Below are positions 29,165 through 62,895 of a stretch of 64,000 nt of DNA, piece after piece (position 1 is the stretch's first letter; every line of letters starts with the position of its first letter). The position numbers and the translations under genes were made by a program. The notes beneath the pieces were generated by a model, which was not told the DNA's origin, ran no database searches, and worked only from the letters and a program-made list of their open reading frames with translations. Origin of the DNA: Mizuhopecten yessoensis (lineage: Eukaryota); contig NW_018408633.1 in the NCBI RefSeq assembly GCF_002113885.1, positions 71,249 through 135,248 on the forward strand, in the 5' to 3' direction.

Positions 29165-30480
29165 AGATATATCGGTCAATAGGCATGTTACATTAAGTAC
29201 ACCAGTCAATAGGCATGGTTACACTCTGTACATCGGTCAACAGACCTTGTTACAGTGTGTACATCGGTCAACAGACCTGGTTACAGTGTGTACATCGGTC
29301 AACAGACCTTGTTACAGTGTGTGCATCGGTCAACAGACCTTGTTACAGTATGTACATCGGTCAACAGACCTGGTTACAGTGTGTACATCGGTTAACAGAC
29401 CTTGTTACAGTGTGTACATCGGTCAACAGACCTGGTTACAGTGTGTACATCGGTCAACAGACATTGTTACAGTGTGTGCATCGGTCAACAGACCTGGTTA
29501 CAGTGTGTACATCGGTCAACAGACCTTGTTACAGTGTGTACATCGATCAACAGACCTTGTTACAGTGTGTATATCGGTCAACAGACCTTGTTACAGTGTG
29601 TGCATCGGTCAACAGACCTTGTTACAGTATGTACATCGGCCAACAGACCTGGCTAAAGTGTGTACATCGGTCAACAGACCTTGTTACAGTATGTACATCG
29701 GTCAACAGACCTGGTCACAGTGTGTACATCGGTTAACAGACCTTGTTACAGTGTGTACATCGATCAACAGACCTTGTTACAGTGTGTATATCGGTCAACA
29801 GACCTTGTTACAGTGTGTGCATCGGTCAACAGACCTTGTTACAGTGTGTACATCGGTCAATAAGCATGTTACAGTATGTACATCGGCCAACAGACCTGGT
29901 TAAAGAGTGTACATCGGTCAACAGACCTTGTTACAGAGTGTACATCGGTCAACAGACCTTGTTACAGTATGTACATCGGCCAACAGACCTGGCTAAAGTG
30001 TGTACATCGGTCAACAGACCTTGTTACAGTGTGTGCATCGGTCAACAGACCTTGTTACAGTGTGTACATCTGTCAATAGGCATGTTACAGTGTGTACATC
30101 GGTCAACATACCTTGTTACAGTGGGTACATCGGTTAACAGACCTTGTTACAGTGTGTACATCGGTCAATAAGCATGTTACAGTATGTACATCGGCCAACA
30201 GACCTGGTTAAAGTGTGTACATCGGTCAACAGACCTTGTTACAGTGTGTACGTCGGTCAACAGACCTTGTTACTGAGTGTACATCGGTCAACAGACCTTG
30301 TTACAGAGTGTACATCGGTCAACAGACCTTGTTACAGAGTGTACATCGGTCAACAGACCTTGTTACAGTGTGTACATCGGTCAATAAGCATGTTACAGTA
30401 TGTACATCGGCCAACAGACCTTGTTACAGTGTGTACATCGGTTAACATACCTTGTTACAAATTGATCGGTTAACAGACAT
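29165..30480. repeat. 31-bp minisatellite, ~42 copies, in intron 1 of the EF-hand gene
   Basis: Unit acatcggtcaacagaccttgttacagtgtgt; period 31. Confidence 0.95.
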
Positions 30481-35719: not shown

Positions 35720-35762
35720 CCAATCGTTATGATGCGATAATGCCAGCTAATAATTATAAATA
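35720..35762 (+). promoter_or_regulatory. Putative core promoter (CCAAT and TATA box) of the repeat/HExxH gene
   Basis: CCAAT at 35720-35724 and TATAAATA at 35755-35762, about 40 nt upstream of the signal-peptide ATG at 35796. Confidence 0.5.
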
Positions 35763-35795
35763 AGTAGGTTTTTGAATGACCACAAACACTCCAGG

Positions 35796-35859
35796 ATGGC
35801 TAGAATTATTGTAATAATCATTATCCTGACAACTTATCTCTCATGCGTCCAATCTCAAG
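35796..35859 (+). CDS. Exon 1 of the repeat/aKG-HExxH gene: secretory signal peptide
   Basis: MARIIVIIIILTTYLSCVQSQ-G|gtaagt: basic N-terminus, hydrophobic core, V-Q-S cleavage motif. The phase-1 donor joins in frame to the acceptor at 37513. Confidence 0.85.
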
Positions 35860-37513
35860 GTAAGTGTACAGTTTGTAGTAATTTAACCTGTTATCACCGT
35901 AATTGTGTTGTAGCAAACGCAACACTAATGTTTTTAAGGCAGTATGCGAATGACAAAAACAAAACAAAACCGATTGAAGACATTTATATCAAATATTTTT
36001 AGCATGTATATTTTAAAGCAAATGTATTTTTGATAAGCGTAAATGAAGAAGTGTCTAAGATTCAAATCGTGTTTTAATAATTTTTGTAATAAGCATTGTC
36101 ATTTAGTTACATGTAGATCGCTCTGTCGCATTGTTATACCAAACTTTCCAATTATATTACGTTGTCTTTATGCATAGCTTCTTGTCTACATAACACTAGC
36201 CGATTTGTTTCTTTGGTAGATAACACTGTCACTTGGGACGAGCTTCGGTTAGTAATTCGGGAAAAAGAACTACAACGAATTGATTACAATTTCAAATATT
36301 TATTAACAATTATATAAAATCCTAAATATTTAGGGCGCACTCACTCACTTTCTCACTCTAGTCTATCCATTATATAGTACATAAGTCTGTAGCACACATC
36401 CACTAAACTGGCCTCCAGTGAACAATTTCACAAAAAATCCTACGATAAATTTTACTCGTAAGAGAAATTTTTGTTCCGTTTCACAAAAAATTATCGTAAC
36501 TTTACGATAGCTTTACCCCTCTCTTAAGTGGTAATTTGTATCGTAAATGTAAATAAATCTAAAGATTTTAATCGTAATTTCAAATAAACAAGGCTGCTAC
36601 GATTGGTTTGAAAACGAATTAAAGAGCGATGTATCGTGAAAAGGTTTTTCGAGACAGATTTAACCACTGCACCTAAGCCATGCCCTATTTCTAACAAAAC
36701 CATATAGATGTTCCATAAGGGGCCGTGTTAGTTTTAAGCACACAACGACAATTTGAATTGCATTTTTAATAGATGAATAGTAAGTATGTTTGGTTTGACC
36801 GTCCTTGATGTTTAAATCTGATCAGTATGTTGCGAAAATCACACACGAACTATTCCTCAATCAGGAAATCTCAGTATCATATACTTAGTACACGTACTTA
36901 AAACTTACACAGCATATAGCCTCACGTTAGTAGGCCTACAGGCAAATTCGTCATATGTGCTAATCATAATATGTATGAGTAAAAAAATAGCATGTGTTAC
37001 AAAATAATTCATGTGGTACAATGTAGTAACAGCGTAGACTACGTACTTATTAATACAGCATGTCTATTCTTTCCCCGCACGTGAACAGACAACGTATTAT
37101 GTAAGGTAAAACATTGAATAAAACACGTGAATCCGTTACGACGTAAGACTTATTTCTGTATACTAAGCACTTTGAGAAGTTGAGAATAATACGTATTTGA
37201 ACAAGACATAGTTCGTGACAGTTTTACCTTAAAAACATTTCATGCACACATGGGTGAGAGCCGAGAGGGCGCCGCTTGTCTATAAAATTCGTGACTTCGG
37301 TTAAGTTCTGTATTTTCAATTTCGTATAGAAAAAACTGAAATACTTAGTTTTGAGTATTGTCCAGGCACAAGTAATAACTGTATCAACGTAATCTCTGTG
37401 AAATATTTGCTGCCTTTTCCGAAATCGTAACGATGCTGTCTGTAAAATCTCCAAACGAAAGTTATATCCATCTCGGGGTACTAATATGTTATCATTTATT
37501 TGTTATTTTTCAG

Positions 37514-40500
37514 GTAGTTTCAAAAACGTTCAGAGGTTAAGTAAACTTATCAAAGTTGCAAGAAGCTACATAGGAGTAAACTGGCCCAGTAATGATCTGC
37601 ATGTAAAAGTGAGTAACTTGCAAACGCATGACACCTTTGGAGCTGATTTAACTAACAACTTAAATGCTGAAGCAAACAGTTTGCAGACTCGGGACGCAGA
37701 TGATGCTGATTTTAGTGAAGATCCGAAGGTTAGAGTAACCAGGTTGCAGACTCGGGATGCAGATGATGCTGATTTCAGTGAAGATCCAAAGGTCAGAGTA
37801 ACCAGGTTGCAGTCTCGGGACGCTGATGATGCTGATTTCAGTGAAGATCCGAAGGTTAAAGTTACCAGGTTGCAGACTCGGGATGCAGATGATGCTGATT
37901 TCAGTGAAGATCCTAAGGTTAGAGTAACCAGGTTGCAGACTCGGGACACTGATGATGCTGATTTCAGTGAAAATCCGAAGGTTAAAGTTACCAGGTTGCA
38001 GACTCGGGACGCAGATGATGCTGATTTTAGCGAAGATCCGAAGGTTAGAGGAACCAGGTTGCAGACTCGGGACGCTGATGATGCTGATTTCAGTGAATAT
38101 CCTAAGGTTAGAGTAACCAGGTTGCAGACTCGGGACACTGATGATGTTGCAGACTCGGGATGCAGATGATGCTGATTTTAGCGAAGATCCGAAGGTTAGA
38201 GTAACCAGGTTGCAGACTCGGGAGGCAGTTGCTGCTGATTTCAGTAAAGATCCGAAGGTTAGAGTAACCAGGTAGATGATGCTGATTTTAGCGAAGATCC
38301 GAAGGTTAGAGGAACCAGGTTGCAGACTCGGGACGCTGATGATGCTGATTTCAGTGAAGATCCTAAGGTTAGAGTAACCAGGTTGCAGACTCGGGACACT
38401 GATGATGCTGATTTCAGTGAAAATCCGAAGGTTAGAGTAACCAGGTTGCAGACTCGGGAGGCAGATGCTGCTGATTTCAGTAAAGATCCGAAGGTTAGAG
38501 TAACCAGGTAGATGATGCTGATTTTAGCGAAGATCCGAAGGTTAGAGTAACCAGGTTGCAGACTCGGGACACTGATGATGCTGATTTCAGTGAAAATCCG
38601 AAGGTTACAGTAACCAGGTTGCAGTCTCGGGACGCTGATGATGCTGATTTCAGTGAATATCCTGAGGTTAGAGTAACCAGGTTGCAGACTCGGGACGCTG
38701 ATGATGCTGATTTCAGTGAAAATCCGAAGGTTAGAGGAACCAGGTTGCAGACTCGGGACGCTGATGATGCTGATTTCAGTGAAAATCCGAAGGTTAGAGT
38801 ACCAGGTTGCAGACTCGGGACGCAGATGATGCTGATTTCAGTGAAGATAAGAAGGTTAGAGTAACTAGGATGCAGACCCGGGAGGCAAATGATGCTGATT
38901 TTAGCGAAGATATGATGATGATTTCAGTGAAGATCCTAAGGTTAGGGTAACCAGGTTGCAGACTCGGGTTGCAGATGATGCTGATTTCAGTGAAGATCCT
39001 AAGGTTAGGGTAACCAGGTTGCAGACTCGGGTTGCAGATGATGCTGATTTCAGTGAAAATCCGAAGGTTAGAGTAACCAGGTTGCAGACTCGGGACGCAG
39101 ATGATGCTGATTTCAGTGAAAATCCGAAGGTTAGAGTACCAGGTTGCAGACTCGGGACGCAGATGATGCTGATTTTAGCGAAGATCCGAAGGTTAGAGTA
39201 ACCAGGTTGCAGACTCGGGATGCCGATGATGCTGATTTCAGTGAAAATCCGAAGGTTAGAGTAACTAGGTTGCAGACTCGGGAGGCAGATGATTCTGATT
39301 TCAGTGAAGAACCGAACGTTAGAGTAACCAGGTTGCAGACTCGGGACGCAGATGCTGCTGATTTCAGTGAAGATCCGATGGTTAGAGTAACCAGGTTGCA
39401 GACTCGGGACGCAGATGATGCTGATTTCAGTGAAGATCCGAACGTTCGAGTCACCAGGTTGCAGACTCGGGACGCAGATGATGATGCTGATTTCAGTGAA
39501 GATCCGAACGTTAGAGTAACCAGGTTGCAGACTCGGGACACTGATGATGCTGATTTCAGTGAAGATCCTAAGGTTAGAGTAACCAGGTTGCAGACTCGGA
39601 ACGCTGATGATGCTGATTTCAGTGAAGATCCGAAGGTTAGAGTGACCAGGTTGCAGACCCGGGAGGCAGATGATGCTGATTTTAGCGAAGATCCGTATGT
39701 TAGAGTAACCAGGTCGCAGACTCGGGACGCAAATGATGCTGATTTTAGCGAAGATCCGTATGTTAGAGTAACCAGGTCGCAGACTCGGGACGCAAATGAT
39801 GCTGATTTCAGTGTAGATCCTAAGGTTAGAGTAACCAGGTTGCAGACTCGGGACGCAGATGAAGCTGATTTCAGTGAAGATCCGAAGGTAAGAGTAACCA
39901 GGTTGCAGACTCGGGATGCGGATGATGCTGATTTCAGTGAAGATCCTAAGGTTAGAGTAACCAGGTTGCAGACTCGGGACACTGATGATGCTGATTTCAG
40001 TGAAAATCCGAAGGTTAGAGTAACCAGGTTGCAGACTCGGGAGGCAGATGCTGCTGATTTCAGTAAAGATCCGAAGGTTAGAGTAACCAGGTTGGTAACC
40101 AGGTTGCAGTCTCGGGACGCTGATGATGCTGATTTCAGTGAAGATCCTAAGGTTAGAGTAACCAGGTTGCAGACTCGGGACACTGATGATGCTGATTTCA
40201 GTGAAAATCCGAAGGTTAGAGTAACCAGGTTGCAGACTCGGGATGCCGATGATGCTATTTTCAGTGAAGATCCGAAGGTTAGAGTAACCAGGTTGCAGAC
40301 TCGGGAGGCAGATGCTGCTGATTTCAGTAAAGATCCGAAGGTTAGAGTAACCAGGTTGCAGTTTCGGGACGCAGATGATGCTGATTTCAGTGAAGATCCG
40401 AACGTTCGAGTCACCAGGTTGCAGACTCGGGACGCAGATGATGCTGATTTCATTGAAGATCCGAACGTTGGAGTAACCAGGTTGCAGACTCGGGACACTG

Positions 40501-43095
40501 ATGATACTGATTTCAGTGAAGATCCGAAGGTTAGAGTAACCAGGTTGCAGACTCGGGACGCAGATGATGCTGATTTCATTGAAGATCCGAACGTTGGAGT
40601 AACCAGGTTGCAGACTCGGGACACTGGTGATACTGATTTCAGTGAAGATCCGAAGGTTAGAGTAACCAGGTTGCAGACTCGGGACGCAGAGGATACTGAT
40701 TTCAGTGAAGATCCAAAGGTTAGAGTAACCATGTTGCAGACTCGGGATGCAGGTGATGCTGATTTCAGTGAAGATCCTAAGGTTAGAGTAACCAGGTTGC
40801 AGACTCCGGACGCAGATGAAGCTGATTTCAGTGAAGATCCGAAGGTTAGAGTAACCAGGTTGCAGACTCCGGACGCAGATGATGCTGATTTCAGTGAAGA
40901 TCCGAAGGTTAGAGTACCCAGGTTGCAGACTCGGGACGCAGATGATGCTGATTTCAGTGAAGATAAGAAGGTTAGAGTAACTAGGTTGCAGACCCGGGAG
41001 GCAAATGATGCTGATTTTAGCGAAGATCCGAAGGTTAGAGTAACCAGGTTGCAGACTCGGGACGCAAATGATACTGATTTCAGTGAAGATCCGAAGGTAA
41101 GAGTAACCAGGTTGCAGACTCGGGATGCAGATGATGCTGATTTCAGTGAAGATCCGAACGTTCGAGTCACCAGGTTGCAGACTCGGGACGCAGATGAAGC
41201 TGATTTAACTGAAGATCCTAAGGTTAGAGTAACCAGGTTGCAGACTCGGGACGCTGATGATGCTGATTTCAGTGAAGATCCGAACGTTAGAGTCACCAGG
41301 TTGCAGACTCGGGATGCAGATGAAACTGATTTCAGTGAGGATCCGAAGGTTAGAGTAACCAGGTTGCAGACTCGGGACGCAGATCATGCTGATTTCAGTG
41401 AAGATCCGAAGGTTAGAGTCACCAGGTTGCAGTCTCGGGACGCAGATGATGCTGATTTCAGTGAAGATAAGAAGGTTAGAGTAACCAGGTTGCAGACTCG
41501 GGACGCAGATGATGCTGATTTCAGTGAAGATCCGAAGGTTAGAGTCACCAGGTTGCAGTCTCGGGACGCAGATGATGCTGATTTCAGTGAAGATCCGAAC
41601 GTTAGAGTAACCAGGTTGCAGACCCGGGAGGCAGATGATGCTGATTTTAGCGAAGATGCGAAGGTTGTAGTAACCAGGTTGCAAACTCGGGACGTAGATG
41701 TAGCTGATTTCAGTGAAGATTCGAAGGGTAGAGTAACCAGGTTTCAGATTCGGGACGCTGATGACTTTGTTTATGATAGAGATCCAAATGTTGAAGCAAA
41801 CAGGTTACAGATTCGAGACGCTGACTATGTTGATATTAGTAAAGATCCCAATAACAAAACAACAAAGAAAACAATAAAAGCTGCTCATAAAGCTGGATTT
41901 AGTGACCTTTCAAACCGAAATATCTCTGAAAAACTTTTTATGACGGCCATGAACGCCGAGCAGTCAAGAGAAAATGGAAATCATCAAGATGTAAAAGAAG
42001 CTTCTTACAACGGGATGTGTTTATTCCAAAGGAAATCGTTTTATGATGACTTTCAAGATACTGTAGGCTGGTTGTCCGAAGTGAAAGCGGTTTCAAGGCG
42101 TCATATACCAGAAAATGCGATGACATTCTTGGACTAATGGAACGAATTCTTGCCTCTGATATCGCATGTGGACAGATCAATGTCCCCTACTATGAAAACG
42201 CTCTCAATCAAATCTTCCCTTCATGGTATGAGCTTAACAAACGCGTTTGTAAATGCATTTTGGCCATTTAATCATAAGATCTCAAGATTTAACCAACTGT
42301 TAGGGTTAACGGTGTTCTCTTCTACGTCTAAAGAAGAAGCGACGAAGGTAGCGTTCTTTAAGCATTTATCACATTACCAGATGATTGAAATTCCAGTCGA
42401 GGAACACAAGGTAGTCTACAGTTTCGATGACCCTGCGCTTGTTGACGGTCTCAATAGGTCAACGTTAGTTGACTTTAGTGAAGAATACGTCACAGCTGGC
42501 AACCACACCTTCAGTGGGGAAGAACAGGAACAAATTATAAAAAATGTGGATGAAGCATTTGGATTGATTCAACAAGTATCACCTGGTTTACACAAGGCCA
42601 TAGTACAGTTAGTCGGCTGCATTGCGTTTTACAAGGCAGAGACACGATATTATGCGGGTGGAACAGTCAGTTCTGCTCTTGGCGTCATATGGATGGATCC
42701 CAGTGCTAGAAAAAGAATGGGTTGTTCCCTTTTACGCAGAACAAATAGTTCATGAATTCATACACACGTCTCTCTTCTACGCTGAACTTGTTCATGGAAC
42801 GTACACGGACCATGCTAACCTGAAAAAGGCTCAGGTGAAATCCTCAATTCGACGACAGCTAAGGGATTATGACAAAGCCTTCCATGCCGCCTACGTCTCA
42901 ACTGGTCTGGTGACCTTCCACACAAGGGCGGGATATATGAAGCGCGCTACACAACTAGCTATGAACTTACGTTCCAGCATTGACGATTTGGAGAAAGTTG
43001 GCATGGAAACACGAATCCTAAACGAGTCTGGAGTGGCAATGTTGCAATCTTTAGTTGATATGTTGGAAATGACTCGAATTGAACGCATGGAATAA
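37514..43095 (+). CDS. Exon 2: ~60-65 tandem 21-aa acidic repeats fused to a C-terminal aKG-HExxH-type peptide-modifying (beta-hydroxylase-like) domain; frame disrupted in this copy
   Basis: Acceptor ttatttttcag|GT AGT TTC continues the exon-1 frame. ORFs 37486, 38320, 38556, 38956 and 39144 encode the same repeat. ORF 42150 is in frame with ORF 39144 behind one TAA (42135), and ORF 42622 joins it via a one-base shift in an A5 run (42710-42714). Stop at 43093; AATAAA at 43137. Confidence 0.8.
37681..41760 (+). repeat. 63-bp coding tandem repeat (LQTRDADDADFSEDPKVRVTR), ~60-65 copies
   Basis: Unit ttgcagactcgggacgcagatgatgctgatttcagtgaagatccgaaggttagagtaaccagg. Diverged in-frame copies occur at both edges. 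Confidence 0.97.
42272..43095 (+). CDS. aKG-HExxH family domain (HEXXH-motif peptide modification protein, putative Fe/2-oxoglutarate beta-hydroxylase)
   Basis: ...AFGLIQQVSPGLHKAIVQLV...GGTVSSALGVIWMDP...EWVVPFYAEQIVHEFIHTSLF (HEFIH at 42751-42765)...VKSSIRRQLRDYDKAFHAAYV (third His at 42883). Motif order and spacing match bacterial HExxH RiPP-modifying proteins. Recognised by eye, not by database search. Confidence 0.78.
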
Positions 43096-43450
43096 ACGGA
43101 TTTAAAGTTGTGTGCATTTTTAACTCGGTTCCTGTCAATAAAATACACAGAAGGGTTGTAGTATGACGAAACTGTGTTATTTGAGAAAAGGTATTAACTT
43201 CATCTTATACGTATCAATCGTATATTTTTGCTGAGGTAAATATGAGGTTATGTTGACCTGATTAAGCGATTATGACCTCCAATTTGTCACGGTCAATATT
43301 ACTGTTCAGATGCACGTAACCACATATTCAACAGAACAACATCCTTGATTCAAACATCAGATGGAATATATTATTAAAATAAAATTCATTATACTGAATG
43401 TACATCTGTAGCAGAGTGCACTGTAAAGTTACAATTATAAATGTGCCTTA

Positions 43451-44539
43451 GGTTCCACAGGTCCCCTAAAAGATGTAATAGTCACCCTAAATTTCAGCCC
43501 CCCGGCAAGTCATATTAAAAAAACGGAATATATATATATGTAATTTAATATATTGAACTTGTACATGATATATCAAAAAGGTACTTAACCAAGTTAACGA
43601 AGTCAAAATACGGCATTAAGGCTGATATAATGATAAACGTTGCTAACAAGATTTATAAAATGTCAATCTCTTAAGCGACCCAACTGAATGTTACGAAGTG
43701 ACTTGTTATTTGAAGATCATTTATAAACCTAGGTCATGCGGGGCTGTATCTCTCTTTAACCATGGGGGAGATGTATAGCGGCCTCACAAGAAAATGATTG
43801 TTGCTATAGGAAAGTACAAAAATCATAGTAAAACGTCCGCGTAACAAATTTTACCGGTATAAACGTGTAAAACCATAGACCTTTGACCATAAACACTACT
43901 TAAACTTCATATAAATGCCCTTTGTTAACATTCAATGTTTTTATAAAAGAGCTAGAAGTGTTACATGTATAAGCATTATTGTACTTTTCAGCTTCAACTT
44001 TTAAACATGTCTAGCGCATTCCTATAATCAAAGAATATTATCAAATGGCAGATCATTTAAAGTTCATTTATCTATCAATGTTATTTAGCCTTTGTTTTCT
44101 TATTTATAAATTGCTAGAAAGCATTACCAGGCGATTTTACTATGATTCTATTGGTTTCGTATTGCAACATCAATCTTTATTTGAGGTCGGAATTCCTCTA
44201 AACAGCTAGTAGAAGAGAAATAGAGCTCCACATGACCTGGAATATAAATAAACTTTAAATTATGGGTCATTTCTCAGCACTGAGTTGAATCGTAAAAGAA
44301 ATTGACATGTTTTTTAAGTCCAGTGATATATTTTTATGAAGACATAAGCCTTAATGCCTTATTTTTGACTACGTTAACCTGGCTATGTATTTTGTGTATA
44401 GCCAATGTACAAGTTTAATATATACAAATAAAAGTGTTACATATATAAGTTCCGATTTTTAATTGAGGTCTTTGAACACTTTTTATCAGAGGGTTGACAT
44501 TTTAGGTGACTACAGAATCTTTTAGGGGCTTGTTGAACC
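43451..44539. mobile_element. MITE with long (~200 bp) imperfect TIRs and TTAA-like flanks (Kolobok-like)
   Basis: ggttccacaggtcccctaaaaga...aacttgtaca...ggcattaaggct is mirrored by agccttaatgcc...tgtacaagtt...tcttttaggggcttgttgaacc|ttaa. Confidence 0.65.
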
Positions 44540-44769
44540 TTAATAAAGATGCGTCTAAATAAATAACATCGAGACAACATCAAAAATCGACAACCTTCAC
44601 GTGATCTTATTCTGACCAATCAGAATGTAGATCATTCTATATGGAAAGCAGATCAATACAAACAAGATCAACACATCAATGTGCAAGAAAGAGTAGGTAG
44701 TTATATAGATTATTTTCAGTTTATCAGTATACAAGTCTGATACATGATTTTCAGTTTTAGAGTCTTCAT

Positions 44770-46637
44770 GGTCAGTGCTTGTCAATATACAGACATACGG
44801 TCCTTGTCAATGTGTATCAATATATAGACATACGGTCCTTGTCAGTGTTTATCAATATATAGAAATACGGTCCTGGTCAGTGTTTATCAATGTATAGACA
44901 CACGGTCCTTGTCAGTGTTTATCAATATATAGACATACGGTCCTGGTCAGTGTGTATCAATATATAGACATACGGACCTTGTCAGTGTGTATAAATATAT
45001 AGACATACGGTCCTGGGCAGTGTTTATTAATATATAGACATACGGTCCTGGTCAGTGTGTATCAATATATAGACATACGGTCCTGGGCAGTGTTTATTAA
45101 TATCTAGACATACGGTCCTGGTCAGTGTTTATCAATATATAGACATACGGTCCTGGGCAGTGTTTATTAATATATAGACATACGGTCCTGGTCAGTGTTT
45201 ATCAATATATAGACATACGGTCCTGGTCAGTGTTTATCAATATATAGACATACGGTCCTGGTCAATGTTTATAAATATATAGACATACGGTCCTGGTCAG
45301 TGTTTATTAGTATATAGACATACAGTCCTTGTCAGTGTTTATCAATATATAGACATACGGTCCTGGTCAGTGTTTATCAATATAAAGACATACGGTCCTG
45401 GTCAGTGTTTACCAATATATAGACATAAGGTCCTGGTCAATGTTTATAAATATCTAGACATACGGTCCTGGTCAGTGTTCACCTGTATCAATATATAGAC
45501 ATACGGTTCTGGTCAGTGTTTACCTGTATCAATATATAGACATACGGCCCTGGTCAGTGTTTATCAATATATAGTCATACGGTCCTCGTAAGTGTTTATC
45601 AATATATAGACATAAGGTCCTGGTCAATGTTTATAAATATCTAGACATACGGTCCTGGTCAGTGTTTATGAATATATAGACATACGGTCCTGGTCAGTGT
45701 TTATCAATATATAGACAGCCGGTCCTTGTCAGTGTTTTTCAATATATAGACATACGGTCCTGGTCAGTGTTTATCAATATATAGACTGGTCAGTGTTTAT
45801 CAACATATAGACATACGGTCCCTGTCAGTGTTTATCAATATCTAGACATACGGTCCTGGGCAGTGTTTATCAATATATAGTCAGCCGGTCCTTGTCAGTG
45901 TTTTTCAATATATAGACATACGGGGGGGGTCAGTGTTTATCAATGTATAGACATACGGTCCTCGTCAATTGATATACGGTCCTGGTCAGTTTTTATCAAT
46001 ATATAGATATACGTTCCTGGTCAGTGTTTATAAATATATAGACATACGGTCCTGGTCAGTGTTTATCAATATATAGATATACGGTCCTGGTCAGTGTTTA
46101 TCAATATATAGACACACGGTCCTGGTCAGTGTTTATCAATATATAGACATACGGTCCTTGTCTAGACACACGGTCCTGGTCAGTGTTTATCAATATAGAG
46201 ACATATGGTCCTGGTCAGTGTTTATGAATATAAAGACATGCGGTCCTTGTCAGTGTTTATGAATACTGGTCAGTGTTTATCAATATATAGACATAAGGTA
46301 CTTGTCAGTGTTTATCTATAGACATACGGTACTTGTCAATGTGTATCAATATATAGACATACGTTCCTTGTCAGTGTTTATCAATATATAGGCATACGGT
46401 CCTGGTCAGTGTTTATCAATATATAGACATAAGGTCCTTGTCAGTGTTTATCTATAGACATACGGTCCTTGTCAATGTGTATCAATATATAGACATACGG
46501 TCCTTGTCAGTGTTTATCAATATATAGACATACGGTCCTGGTTAATGTTCACATGTATCAATATATAGACAGAGGGACCTGGTCAGTGTTTATCAATTTA
46601 TAGACATACGGTCCTGGGCAGTGTTTATCAATATATA
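44770..46637. repeat. 35-bp minisatellite (family B), left block
   Basis: Unit gtcagtgtttatcaatatatagacatacggtcctg. Confidence 0.95.
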
Positions 46638-47304: not shown

Positions 47305-48255
47305 TGTATCAATATATAGACATATGGTCCTGGCCAGTGTTTATCAATATATAGACATAAGGTCCTGGTCAGTGTTTATCCATATATAGACATACGGTCC
47401 TGGTCAGTGTTTACTTGTATCAATGTCTCGACATACGGTCCTGGTCAGTGTTTACTTGTATCAATGTCTCGACATACGGTCCTGGTCAGTGTTTACCTGT
47501 ATCAGTATATAGACATACGGTCCTGGTCAGTGTTTATCACTATAATTACATAAGGTCCTGGTCAGTGTTTATCCATATATAGACATACGGTCCTGGTCAA
47601 TGTTTATCAATATATAGACATATTGTCCTGGTTAGTTTTTATCAATATATAGACATACGGTCCTGGTCAGTGTTTATCAATATATAGACATATTGTCCTG
47701 GTTAGTTTTTATCAATATATAGATATACGGTCCTGGTCAGTGTTTATCAATATATAGACATACGGTCCTTGTCAGTGTTTATGAATATATAGACATATGG
47801 TCCTGGTCAGTGTTTATCAATATATAGACATACGGTCTGGTCAGTGTTTATCAATATATAGACATATGGTTCTGGTTAGTTTTTATCAATATATTGTCCT
47901 GGTCAGTGTTTATCAATATATAGACATATGGTCCTGGTCAGTGTTTATGAATATATAGACATACGGTCCTTGTCAGTGTTTATGAATATATAGACATACG
48001 GTCCTCGTCAGTGTTTATGAATATATAGACATATTGTCCTGGTCAGTGTTTATCAATATATTGTCCTGGTCAGTGTTTATCAATATATAGACATATGGTC
48101 CTGGTCAGTGTTTATGAATATAAAGACATGCGGTCCTTGTCAGTGTTTATGAATATATAGACATATGGTCCTGGTCAGTGTTTATCAATATATAGACAGA
48201 GGGACCTGGTCAGTTTTTATGAATATATAGACATATGGTCCTGGTCAGTGTTTTT
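47305..48255. repeat. 35-bp minisatellite (family B), right block
   Basis: The same unit resumes after a ~670-bp unique insertion. Confidence 0.95.
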
Positions 48256-60012: not shown

Positions 60013-60514
60013 GTAAGGTATCTTTATGATCACATACAGAGTTACAACATTTATGGTATAGCTCTGTTGTAATATTGATAGGATTGGATATTACTTGTTT
60101 TTAGTAATTTTGTCCAAAAAAAAAAAAAAAAAGCATTGAAATAATATTTAGCTCGATACATGGAACTAGCGATATCATCATATTTTCTTTAATAGTCATC
60201 CCACAACGAGAAGACTTTTATATCACTTCTTATTATATATATATATATACTTATTCAGTGCAATGCTGTTACGTGTATATCTATTTTACTTCGTTATTAG
60301 TGTAATGTGAGAATAACAGCAGTTAAGATAACAGTTGTATTTTTTCTGTATCTATAATATACGTTTTTAAGTCTGTTTTTGTTTTGTTAGTGGTTGGTTC
60401 TGTGTGTGTTATATAAGTATTTCTCCCTATTAAACAATGTTAGTTTTACTTCAGTTGTTTACTTTTTTTATTCTATATTTGTAATATAATTTGTTTTCCA
60501 TGTATAACTGATTA

Positions 60515-61892
60515 CTGCAGTTGTTCGTGTGAGTTGTCAGTGTGATAACTCGCCCGCTGTCACCGATGTACCACTGTACTACACAGCCTGTAACCCATGC
60601 CAATATCTCTGTTGACTGTATGCTGTAGTTGTTCGTGTGAGTTGTCAGTGTGATAACTCGCCCGTTGTCTCCCGTGTACCACTGTACTACACAGCCAGTA
60701 TCCCCTGCCAATGCCTCTGTTGTCTGTATGTTGTAGTTGTTCGTATGAGGTGTCAGTGTGATAACTCGCCCGTTGTCACCCCTGTACCACTGTACTACAC
60801 ACCCAGTATCACCTGACACTGCCTCTGTTGACTGTATGTTGTAGTTGTTCGTGTGAGTTGTCAGTGTGATAACTCGCCCGCTATCACCGATGTACCACTG
60901 TACTACACAGCCTGTAACCCATGCCAATATCTCTATTGACTGTATGCTGTAGTTGTTCGTGTGAGTTGTCAGTGTGATACCTCGCCCGTTGTCACCCCTG
61001 TACCACTGTACTACAAAGCCAGTATCACCTGACACTGCCTCTGTTGTCTGTATGTTGTAGTTGTTCGTATGAGTTGTCAGTGTGATAACTCGCCCGTTGT
61101 CACCCGTGTACCACTGTACTACACAGCCAGTATCACCTGACACTGCCTCTGTTGTTTGTATGTTGTAGTTGTTCGTGTGAGTTGTAAGTATGATAACTCG
61201 CCCGTTGTCACCCGTGTACCACTGTACTTTACAGCCAGTATCACCTGACACTGCCTCTGTTGTCTGTATGTTGTAGTTGTTCATGTGAGTTGTCATTGTG
61301 ATAACTCTCCCGTTGTTACCGATGTACCACTGGACTACACAGCCAGTAACCCATGCCAATATCTCTGTTGACTGTATGCTTTAGTTGTTCGTGTGAGGTG
61401 TAAGTATGATAACTCGCCCGTTGTCACCGATGTACCACTGTACTACACAGCCAGTAACCCATGCCAATATCCATGTTGTCTGTATGTTGTAGTTGTTCAT
61501 GTGAGTTGTCATTGTGATAACTCTCCCGTTGTTACCGATGTACCACTGTACTACACAGCCAGTATCACCTGACACTGCCTCTGTTGTCTGTATGTTGTAG
61601 TTGTTCGTGTGAGTTGTAAGTGTGATAACTCGCCCGTTATCACCGATGTACCACTGTACTTCACAGCCAGTATCATCTGTATCTGCCTCTGTTGTCTGTA
61701 TGTTGTAGTTGTTCGTGTGAGTTGTAAGTGTGATAACTCGCCCGTTGTCACCCGTGTACCACTGTACTTTACAGCCAGTATCACCTGACACTGCCTCTGT
61801 TGTCCGTATGTTGTAGTTGTTCGTGTGAGTTGTCAGTGTGATAACTCGCCCTTTGTCATCCCTGTACCACTGTACGACACAGCCAGTATCAC
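60515..61892. repeat. 108-bp tandem repeat, 13 copies, each a duplicated splice acceptor plus the 5' part of the CUB exon
   Basis: ag|TTGTTC recurs every 108 bp from 60521 to 61817. Only the last copy continues into TSPGYPRNY and a donor. Confidence 0.95.
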
Positions 61893-61922
61893 TAGTCCCG
61901 GCTACCCCAGAAACTACGCTAT
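61817..61922 (+). CDS. CUB-domain protein exon (end of signal peptide, start of CUB domain)
   Basis: gttgtag|(V)VRVSCQCDNSPFVIPVPLYDTASITSPGYPRNYA-AT|gtaagt. ITSPGYPxNY is the CUB N-terminal motif. Confidence 0.85.
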
Positions 61923-62895
61923 GTAAGTACACCAACAACTGTCTCATTCTTTAAAATAATACAGAGTGATATGGAAGAAGTTTCAAACCACGGCACTAAG
62001 CAATTATCACAACACGTTAAGAAGTTAAAAGAAAACTGAACATAAAGCGTTATTGTTCTTTTAAGCTTTTTACGCGATATCTCATCATTGACCTTTTGGC
62101 TTTCTTTCCGTTGTCTAGCGATAGACCTTCCACACTAACACTGTACACATGTAGCGCTAACGTAGGCAAGACTCCAGGTTTTTTGTTGCTAGTTCTCAAA
62201 CAACGTCTTTGTTTTATTTGGTATGTATTTCACTGAGATATCGTGACGTAGAGAAAGATTTTCCAACACGGCCACGTTTGTGCCCCAGTCTGTTGGTACA
62301 CAATTGAAGCTGCGAGATGATTTAATCCCATGAGTGGGACATAGTCTTAAATTGTGGTATATTGATAATATTATTTCGGTGCCGCCCTTGGCATCCGTGT
62401 CGATTAGATTTATATACGAATGTGAAATAAAATAAAATAGCGTACGGTTAAAATGAAGCGTCTGTATTTTGAACACAACCAGCTTTGATATTACACAAAT
62501 GCACGCATATACAAAACACGTGTACATGTATATGGCCATACACACACATTACTAGCCCATTTAATCATTATAACTCTTGTTTCATTAGTTAAACATATAA
62601 TCTGAAGGTTAAGGCGTTTGTGGTTCATTATCTGTACTGTATATGCTATGATATCATATCTATTGTCATATAGATACAATCTCATTATGATATTTATTGT
62701 TGCAAAAACATACGTGTATTAATTACATAACATATTAGTTGAGTGATACACACAACCTTCCCCGGATACACTTAAAGTAAAATATTATCATTGCACAAAA
62801 ATGAAAATGATATAGTTAACTGTGCTTTGCTAGAACAGTATCAATAACTTTCAAGCAGAGCCTATTGAATCCTTTATGAAAATTGATATTTTCAG

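Follow-up and report, generated by a model that had tools for sequence, protein, structure and literature searches.

The question raised by this locus is whether a gene of the scallop Mizuhopecten yessoensis carries a peptide-modifying enzyme that was acquired from bacteria, and whether that enzyme still works. The window, that is, the whole stretch of 64,000 nucleotides analysed here (contig NW_018408633.1, positions 71,249 to 135,248), contains at 42272-43095 a region that a preliminary description had read as an intronless, bacterial-type HExxH domain, possibly transferred horizontally and domesticated. We conclude, with a probability of about 0.75 for this reading as a whole, that the locus 35796-43095 is a recently disabled, single-copy gene, i.e. 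a pseudogene. Its intact animal relatives combine repeats and a hydroxylase domain of bacterial family in one secreted polypeptide. The finding is of value mainly because this animal family looks undescribed: literature searches on the aKG-HExxH family (TIGR04267/IPR026337) returned only bacterial work and no link to animals.

Identity and fold of the enzyme domain

Two overlapping open reading frames (ORFs) span the region, one at 42150-42755 (frame 0) and one at 42622-43095 (frame 1). The three motifs on which the preliminary description relied are all present, but they do not share one open frame. The first, GGTVSSALGVIW, lies in the frame 0 ORF at 42660-42692, whereas WVVPFYAEQIVHEFIH (42718-42765, with HEFIH at 42751-42765) and SSIRRQLRDYDKAFH lie in the frame 1 ORF. 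Exons and frame pieces were searched separately, not as a joined spliced model. The frame 1 ORF scores 51 bits (E = 1.6e-13) against NCBIfam TIGR04267 (aKG-HExxH-type peptide beta-hydroxylase, mod_HExxH), for which the curated cut-off of the hidden Markov model (HMM) is 40 bits; seven relatives score 56-71 bits, all above this cut-off. The conserved module also starts further upstream than 42272: its linker begins near 42060 and the profile match near 42228. No Pfam family matched either of the two domain pieces. The word search with the N-terminal piece 42150-42752 gave 0 matches, which carries little weight because the candidates were only proteins of 110-350 residues.

A family profile built from 112 sequences identified ChlH of Chlorogloeopsis (8S5F, E = 6e-7) in the PDB, while a search with the single sequence of one relative returned nothing. 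The fold was modelled on an intact relative rather than on the broken window sequence, namely residues 233-518 of P0001 of Mercenaria mercenaria, the closest intact relative of the window copy (68% identity across the C-terminal piece). This AlphaFold2 model reached a mean predicted local distance difference test score (pLDDT) of 95.8 and a predicted template modelling score (pTM) of 0.94. Its only significant Foldseek matches were 8S5F (E = 2e-8, probability 1.0, template modelling score 0.57) and SjiH; unrelated zinc peptidases come next, with E = 0.09 or worse. The C-terminal module of the animal proteins, of about 285 residues, aligns over its full length with whole bacterial proteins of about 280 residues. 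Across the 112 sequences, the residues H, E and H of the HExxH motif do not vary, nor does one R; Q, G, W, P, S, D and H show almost no variation. The window copy retains the HExxH motif and, downstream of it, each of the conserved columns S, R, D and H, and this conservation suggests which residues would act as metal ligands in the animal domain. The curated HMM, the profile-to-PDB match and the predicted fold support the assignment of the window domain to the bacterial aKG-HExxH peptide hydroxylases (TIGR04267/IPR026337), which include ChlH of ChlB-HExxH, BpmH, PflC/PosC and PesO.

Lesions in the scallop copy

The lesions were placed by aligning a read-through of the window copy, with an X at each break, with 19 intact relatives. 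A TAA codon at 42135-42137, in frame with the linker, occupies a conserved column (FLD-x-W) and severs the domain from the upstream repeat array. The switch of frame between DPSA, which ends at 42707, and EKEW, which starts at 42709, corresponds to one surplus base near 42708. The uninterrupted coding sequence that an enzyme needs is therefore broken twice. When the family profile was run against the whole 988-Mb assembly, it found this locus only, split into a piece with profile positions 2-158 and another, in a different frame, with positions 156-279, and a search with a single sequence likewise found one copy. The domestication proposed in the preliminary description holds for the intact relatives and not for the window copy, whose premature stop and frameshift lie in the only copy of the genome. 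The features of the locus are as follows.

35756-35765, plus strand: TATA-like box read from the sequence, about 30 bases upstream of the ATG
35796-35859, plus strand: exon 1, read from the sequence and the ORF, with the ATG at 35796 and a hydrophobic signal peptide of 21 residues, MARIIVIIIILTTYLSCVQSQ; it ends in phase 1
35860-37513, plus strand: putative GT-AG intron with splice sites caag/gtaagt ... ttttcag/gt (GT at 35860, AG at 37512-37513)
37514-37676, plus strand: start of exon 2, with a leader-like segment, KLIKVARSYIGVNW, and its motif at 37555-37581, placed by alignment to the animal pattern L-x-x-N-[IVM]-x-x-Y-x-x-x-[HNY]
37677-41764, plus strand: tandem array of 65 units of 63 bases, or 21 residues (RLQTRDADDADFSEDPKVRVT), delimited by TRF
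41765-42134, plus strand: non-repetitive linker in frame 0, whose end, from about 42060 onward, is conserved in the alignment with 19 relatives
42135-42137, plus strand: in-frame TAA in the FLD-x-W column of the alignment, unchanged in the contigs of runs X5 and X9
42138-42707, plus strand: first part of the enzyme module in frame 0, with FWPF and GGTVSSALGVIW; profile match from about 42228 (profile positions 2-158)
42705-42711, plus strand: site of the frameshift, where DPSA and EKEW are separated by one base too many; unchanged in the contigs of runs X5, X9 and X15
42709-43095, plus strand: second part of the enzyme module in frame 1, with HEFIH, S-x-x-R-x-x-x-R-x-x-D-x-x-x-H, the C-terminal helices and the stop codon at 43093-43095 (TIGR04267; profile positions 156-279)
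43137-43142, plus strand: AATAAA, a putative signal 42 bases past the stop codon

The eukaryotic signals that had been described are thus where they were placed (AATAAA at 43137, a TATA-like box at about 35756 and GT-AG splice sites joining the exons in phase). The putative splice connects exon 1 in phase to the ORF at 37486-38169. The C-terminal piece at 42709-43095 is 48-68% identical to mollusc proteins.

We regard both lesions as genuine in the DNA of the species. They are not assembly slips, because contigs from two other DNA studies, X5 (2025) and X9 (2022), match all 1631 bases of 41770-43400 without a single difference or gap. Between 97 and 100% of the sampled words of this region were recovered in each of fourteen runs, which come from four studies. 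The frameshift site is also crossed by a contig from X15, a run that may be RNA, and this contig is identical to the reference. The raw reads of RNA run X23 gave 0 matches on 41770-43400, a result that has no weight either way on expression. The open frame needed for a functional gene in the species is broken, and the word matches in the runs guessed to be RNA are weak.

The enzyme module is otherwise well kept. It retains 37 of the 38 columns that are invariant among 20 animal proteins and departs from 6 of the 32 columns conserved at 90% or more. These columns, together with the synonymous bias among the repeat units, point to a recent loss of function. As a pseudogene, the window copy dates a loss rather than showing a working enzyme.

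The repeat array

The units of the array are regularly spaced, 56 spacings being exactly 63 bases, and fall into seven frame runs of 8, 2, 3, 4, 2, 3 and 43 units. The six junctions that break the frame, at 38119, 38207, 38443, 38742, 38867 and 39079, are all found within 38119-39141. If these breaks are real, translation from the ATG ends after eight repeats, and the product is at most the signal peptide, the leader and eight repeats. Translation stops at 42135 in any case, and the catalytic half of the domain lies in another frame. Differences among the units at codon positions 1, 2 and 3 number 57, 40 and 109, respectively, and 41% of the changed codons are synonymous, compared with 22% expected at random. 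Given this excess at third positions and of synonymous changes, the repeat peptide was under purifying selection while the array diversified. The unit contains the sequence R-V-T-R, a candidate basic release site.

An animal family with a common architecture

Relatives were collected by an exhaustive HMMER search of 1.84 billion representatives, which gave 252 matches, of which 150 were listed. About 25 of the listed matches are of animal type: they are 48-68% identical to the scallop piece, are mostly 370-1300 residues long, apart from a few fragments, and carry the domain at the C-terminus. The others are mostly proteins of about 280 residues with 24-45% identity, and the 18 that were found in named genomes are all bacterial. 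The named animal-type members are all from molluscs (Mercenaria mercenaria, Mactra antiquata, Mya arenaria, Pinctada imbricata, Haliotis rufescens, H. rubra and H. cracherodii), where they are called 'uncharacterized' or 'hypothetical', and relatives are located on chromosome-scale mollusc records of 35-115 Mb.

These proteins share an architecture consisting of a signal peptide, one or many short lineage-specific repeats, a conserved linker and a C-terminal aKG-HExxH enzyme. Two further members are single uninterrupted ORFs, signal peptide included. The domain of the window copy is without an intron, as had been described, but the Mercenaria gene has a canonical GT-AG intron within the domain, between YVSAG and LVAFH, and the intronless state is therefore not a trait of the family.

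A deep subclade, which includes P0011, P0013, P0151 and P0155, has an additional N-terminal 2OG-Fe(II) oxygenase domain (PF13532). One gene of this subclade is located 6 kb from an intronless cytochrome P450 gene, whose best named matches are anthozoan (Oculina patagonica at 69%, then Desmophyllum, Montipora, Actinostola and Nematostella), with no mollusc among the 120 matches listed. Judging from this neighbour, the subclade is probably hexacoral.

Some further observations were made on these probable coral members. At L003:6001-9903, L023:10001-13948 and L024:8196-11395, PF13532 precedes about 45 repeats of LMRVEDKPSTDPDNRW, so that one repeat protein carries two different oxygenases, PF13532 and aKG-HExxH. 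The pieces of the L024 protein have been called as three adjacent genes. The gene on L023 is flanked by the intronless P450 (498 residues, L023:20215-21708), which has many close unnamed relatives in host-associated assemblies of the ENA, and by an intronless seven-transmembrane receptor gene (L023:3389-4372). Elsewhere among the matches, the C-terminal helical part of the query was matched in 24 separate stretches of P0089 (3151 residues) at 24% identity; P0089 may be a repeat protein built from the helical sub-domain, or a low-complexity artefact.

Origin of the animal clade

A quick, unrooted tree of 156 domain sequences was computed with IQ-TREE (LG+C20+F+G4). The 38 animal rows form one clade (Shimodaira-Hasegawa-like approximate likelihood ratio test, 100) with a stem of 1.12, located within a bacterial group with support of 84-91. 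Its nearest neighbours are sequences from Chitinophagaceae, Acidobacteriota and metagenomes, with weak sister relations. The bacterial members from named genomes belong to Cyanobacteriota, Bacteroidota, Ignavibacteriota, Planctomycetota, Actinomycetota, Acidobacteriota and Melainabacteria, and the nearest large Atlas clusters are 96-100% Bacteria. Among eukaryotes, only molluscs and probable anthozoans were found. The gene therefore has what is expected of a horizontally transferred gene, namely integration in host DNA, an animal clade among bacteria with a patchy eukaryotic distribution, and eukaryotic gene features.

The proposal of horizontal transfer stands with regard to the bacterial family and the single animal clade among bacteria, but the transfer is neither recent nor at the level of the scallop. 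A recent, scallop-specific transfer was rejected because at least five bivalve genera, Haliotis and probable anthozoans possess orthologues of identical architecture. This distribution goes part of the way towards the broad, vertically inherited occurrence in Metazoa that the preliminary description had considered incompatible with transfer. The tree suggests one transfer from a bacterium to an animal, which would be older than the split between bivalves and gastropods. We infer both the direction and the age of this event, and the direction ('nested in bacteria') rests on parsimony because the tree is unrooted. The first split within the animal clade separates a probable coral branch from the mollusc branch. 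Identity between coral and clam is 46%, no lower than that between abalone and clam (41-45%). The coral members would reflect either a still earlier origin with many losses or a later move from animal to animal.

Weighing of the alternatives

Several points weigh against the reading of the locus as a disabled gene of an anciently transferred family. The reference assembly may itself derive from runs X5 and X9, which carry a flag to that effect, although four runs of one 2016 sample are a likelier source; should X5 and X9 come from one individual or line, a single null allele that is not fixed could account for the lesions. The frame breaks in the array could be artefacts of short-read assembly. 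The splice 35859/37514 and the silence of the gene are both putative; in small runs guessed to be RNA, the share of the sampled words is 10-32%. The tree has no root and moderate backbone support, the probable hexacoral identity of one subclade rests on one neighbouring gene, and the chemistry and the modification in cis are what we infer for the relatives rather than what was observed.

The scallop gene might still be intact and functional, with the stop and the frameshift being either a rare null allele or errors of the reference. That the domain is well preserved (37/38 invariant columns) and that the agreeing contigs are flagged as possible sources would fit this explanation, which nevertheless seems quite unlikely in view of the identical contigs from the 2022 and 2025 studies (1631 bases each), the fourteen runs from four studies with 97-100% of the sampled words, the identical X15 contig at the frameshift and the lack of another copy in the assembly. 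It is more improbable still, to the point of being hardly credible, that the enzyme is made from this locus by stop-codon readthrough and programmed frameshifting, or from an internal start. Nothing beyond the good preservation of the domain speaks for such recoding, which would need two independent events, with another six in the array; the frame that begins at 42180, with the first in-frame ATG past the TAA, runs to 42755 and reads the HExxH codons out of frame.

With regard to origin, bacterial contamination or a chimeric assembly is the least probable explanation and was rejected, even though the family is otherwise bacterial and the window domain has no intron. The contig exceeds 135 kb and has animal-type repeats on both sides of the gene, the G+C content of 42001-44000 is 38%, like that of the flanks, independent DNA runs show the same junctions, and the nearest relatives are chromosomal genes of molluscs (48-68% identity, compared with 24-45% for the bacterial-type matches). 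The residence of the gene in animal DNA, as opposed to simple contamination, is thereby confirmed through its flanking repeats and the same sequence in several DNA studies. Vertical descent of an old gene of eukaryotes or metazoans, with loss in most lineages and without any bacterial transfer, is unlikely, but deserves more attention than the other alternatives. The unrooted tree and the first split between corals and molluscs, as expected from a cnidarian-bilaterian ancestor, are in its favour. Against it, no eukaryotic relative beyond molluscs and probable anthozoans was found among the 1.84 billion representatives, the bacterial members span at least six phyla with far greater divergence, the animal clade is inside a bacterial subgroup (support 84-91), and the identity between coral and mollusc (46%) is no lower than that between abalone and clam (41-45%).

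A putative bacterial precursor gene and its possible co-transfer

The preliminary description supposed that the animal enzyme works outside its usual cluster, which would include a radical SAM partner or a transporter. The nearest bacterial relatives are themselves stand-alone enzymes, paired only with a small putative precursor gene upstream, and no radical SAM family was detected by Pfam among the flanking ORFs of the two sister-group loci scanned. Directly upstream of the enzyme gene, 13 of the 18 bacterial loci have a short ORF (51-105 residues) that reads in the same direction. The block N-I-x-x-[YF]-[LIV]-x-x-H is invariant in these ORFs, and so is a Met located 10-20 residues further on within a short core (VMKIADE, VMKLADD, NMHIHEDEDD or NMAARP); two loci have two copies of the core. 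No Pfam or NCBIfam family covers the ORFs, which look like an uncurated family of precursors of RiPPs (peptides that the ribosome makes and that are modified after translation). They occur across loci L005-L019 from several phyla, for example at L017:3473-3691, L007:5726-5992, L010:5480-5794 and L013:5140-5295.

A comparable block, N-[IVM]-x-x-Y-x-x-x-[HNY], is present in all animal subclades 10-40 residues past the signal peptide, as in DNIKRYIEAN, ENIHRYADQH and DNIENYKRIH. The window copy has a derived form, KVARSYIGVN, in which the asparagine of the motif is substituted. When the bacterial precursors and the animal N-termini were compared with hhalign, exactly the leader block was aligned (P = 0.0012), and subsets from the sister group gave 40 aligned columns (P = 0.0067). 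In the AlphaFold2 model of full-length P0159, an intact relative with a single core, the leader block is a helix with a pLDDT of 70-81, forming an island in an otherwise low-confidence N-terminus. The core gave a less clear result. A matrix from 15 bacterial core instances performed no better than shuffles in most animal N-termini and was clearly above them only in P0002 (15/2000 shuffles as good) and P0011 (50/2000). A HMMER profile of the bacterial precursors scored about 6 bits against the animal N-termini and was not separated from reversed or shuffled decoys; the likeness of MKISDA and MKLSDA to the bacterial VMKIADE and VMKLADD is therefore a lead only.

The animal gene seems to encode substrate and enzyme as one polypeptide. 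We tentatively propose, at slightly less than even odds, that a precursor gene and the adjacent stand-alone hydroxylase gene entered an early marine animal together and were fused into a secreted polyprotein, whose core was then amplified into arrays that vary from lineage to lineage and reach about 65 units; the scallop copy would be a recent loss.

Proposed mechanism and known systems

Intact members would be secreted polyproteins consisting of a signal peptide, a leader-like helix, one to dozens of core peptides, a linker and the aKG-HExxH domain. After import of the protein into the endoplasmic reticulum and secretory pathway, the Fe(II)/2-oxoglutarate domain would hydroxylate a residue in each core unit, either in cis or between chains, and proteases acting at basic sites would then free the peptides.

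The aKG-HExxH enzymes were recognised only in 2024. The members characterised in the literature consulted, all of them bacterial, act on ribosomal peptides, in which they hydroxylate the beta carbon of His, Asp, Phe, Gln or Pro; PflC/PosC are in addition able to cut the backbone oxidatively (PMC12636437, PMC13060819). In contrast to these bacterial enzymes, the animal members are the products of chromosomal animal genes, in which a signal peptide precedes the enzyme and the domain is in some cases split by an intron; the presumed substrate, amplified into arrays, is part of the same chain as the enzyme, and there is no fusion to a radical SAM domain. The window copy differs further in being broken.

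Other systems resemble the animal family in single respects. In borosins, the autocatalytic fungal RiPPs of the OphMA type, the modifying enzyme and the core peptide are also in one polypeptide. Borosins use an N-methyltransferase with a single C-terminal core and are cytosolic, whereas the animal family has repeated N-terminal cores, is secreted and uses an oxygenase. ASPH, the animal aspartyl/asparaginyl beta-hydroxylase, catalyses a 2-oxoglutarate-dependent beta-hydroxylation in the secretory pathway, and it may have both reaction type and compartment in common with the animal HExxH family. Its double-stranded beta-helix fold is unrelated, it is vertically inherited, and its substrates are epidermal growth factor (EGF) domains rather than its own repeats. 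Like the animal family, the repeat-type precursors of sponges and the KEX2-processed precursors of fungi, such as UstA (ustiloxin), have a signal peptide followed by many repeats of recognition sequence plus core, but their tailoring enzymes are encoded by separate genes, and no bacterial-type tailoring domain is present in the precursor. The precursors of the proline-rich macrocyclic peptides of sponges, with up to 25 copies and with separate enzymes, are the nearest animal parallel found (PMC10945851).

If the proposed mechanism is correct, the family represents a RiPP-like pathway encoded by animals and derived from a transferred bacterial tailoring enzyme, in which the substrate is fused to the enzyme and the core is free to amplify and diverge. 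Molluscs and corals would then make hydroxylated secreted peptides from a self-contained enzyme-substrate gene, and the family may point to hydroxylated acidic peptides in these two groups of marine calcifiers.

Other repeats in the window

Three further repetitive regions were noted. A satellite of 31 bases (GTGTACATCGGTCAACAGACCTTGTTACAGT), open in several frames, occupies 29215-30459. Directly downstream of the gene are two arrays of a 35-base satellite (TGGTCAGTGTTTATCAATATATAGACATACGGTCC), at 44769-46637 and 47307-48253. On the minus strand, 60451-61947 contains long ORFs of a repeat of about 36 residues (...SGDTGCVVQWYTGDNGRVITLTTHTNNYNIQTTEAV...), which is probably a tandem DNA repeat that is open by chance.

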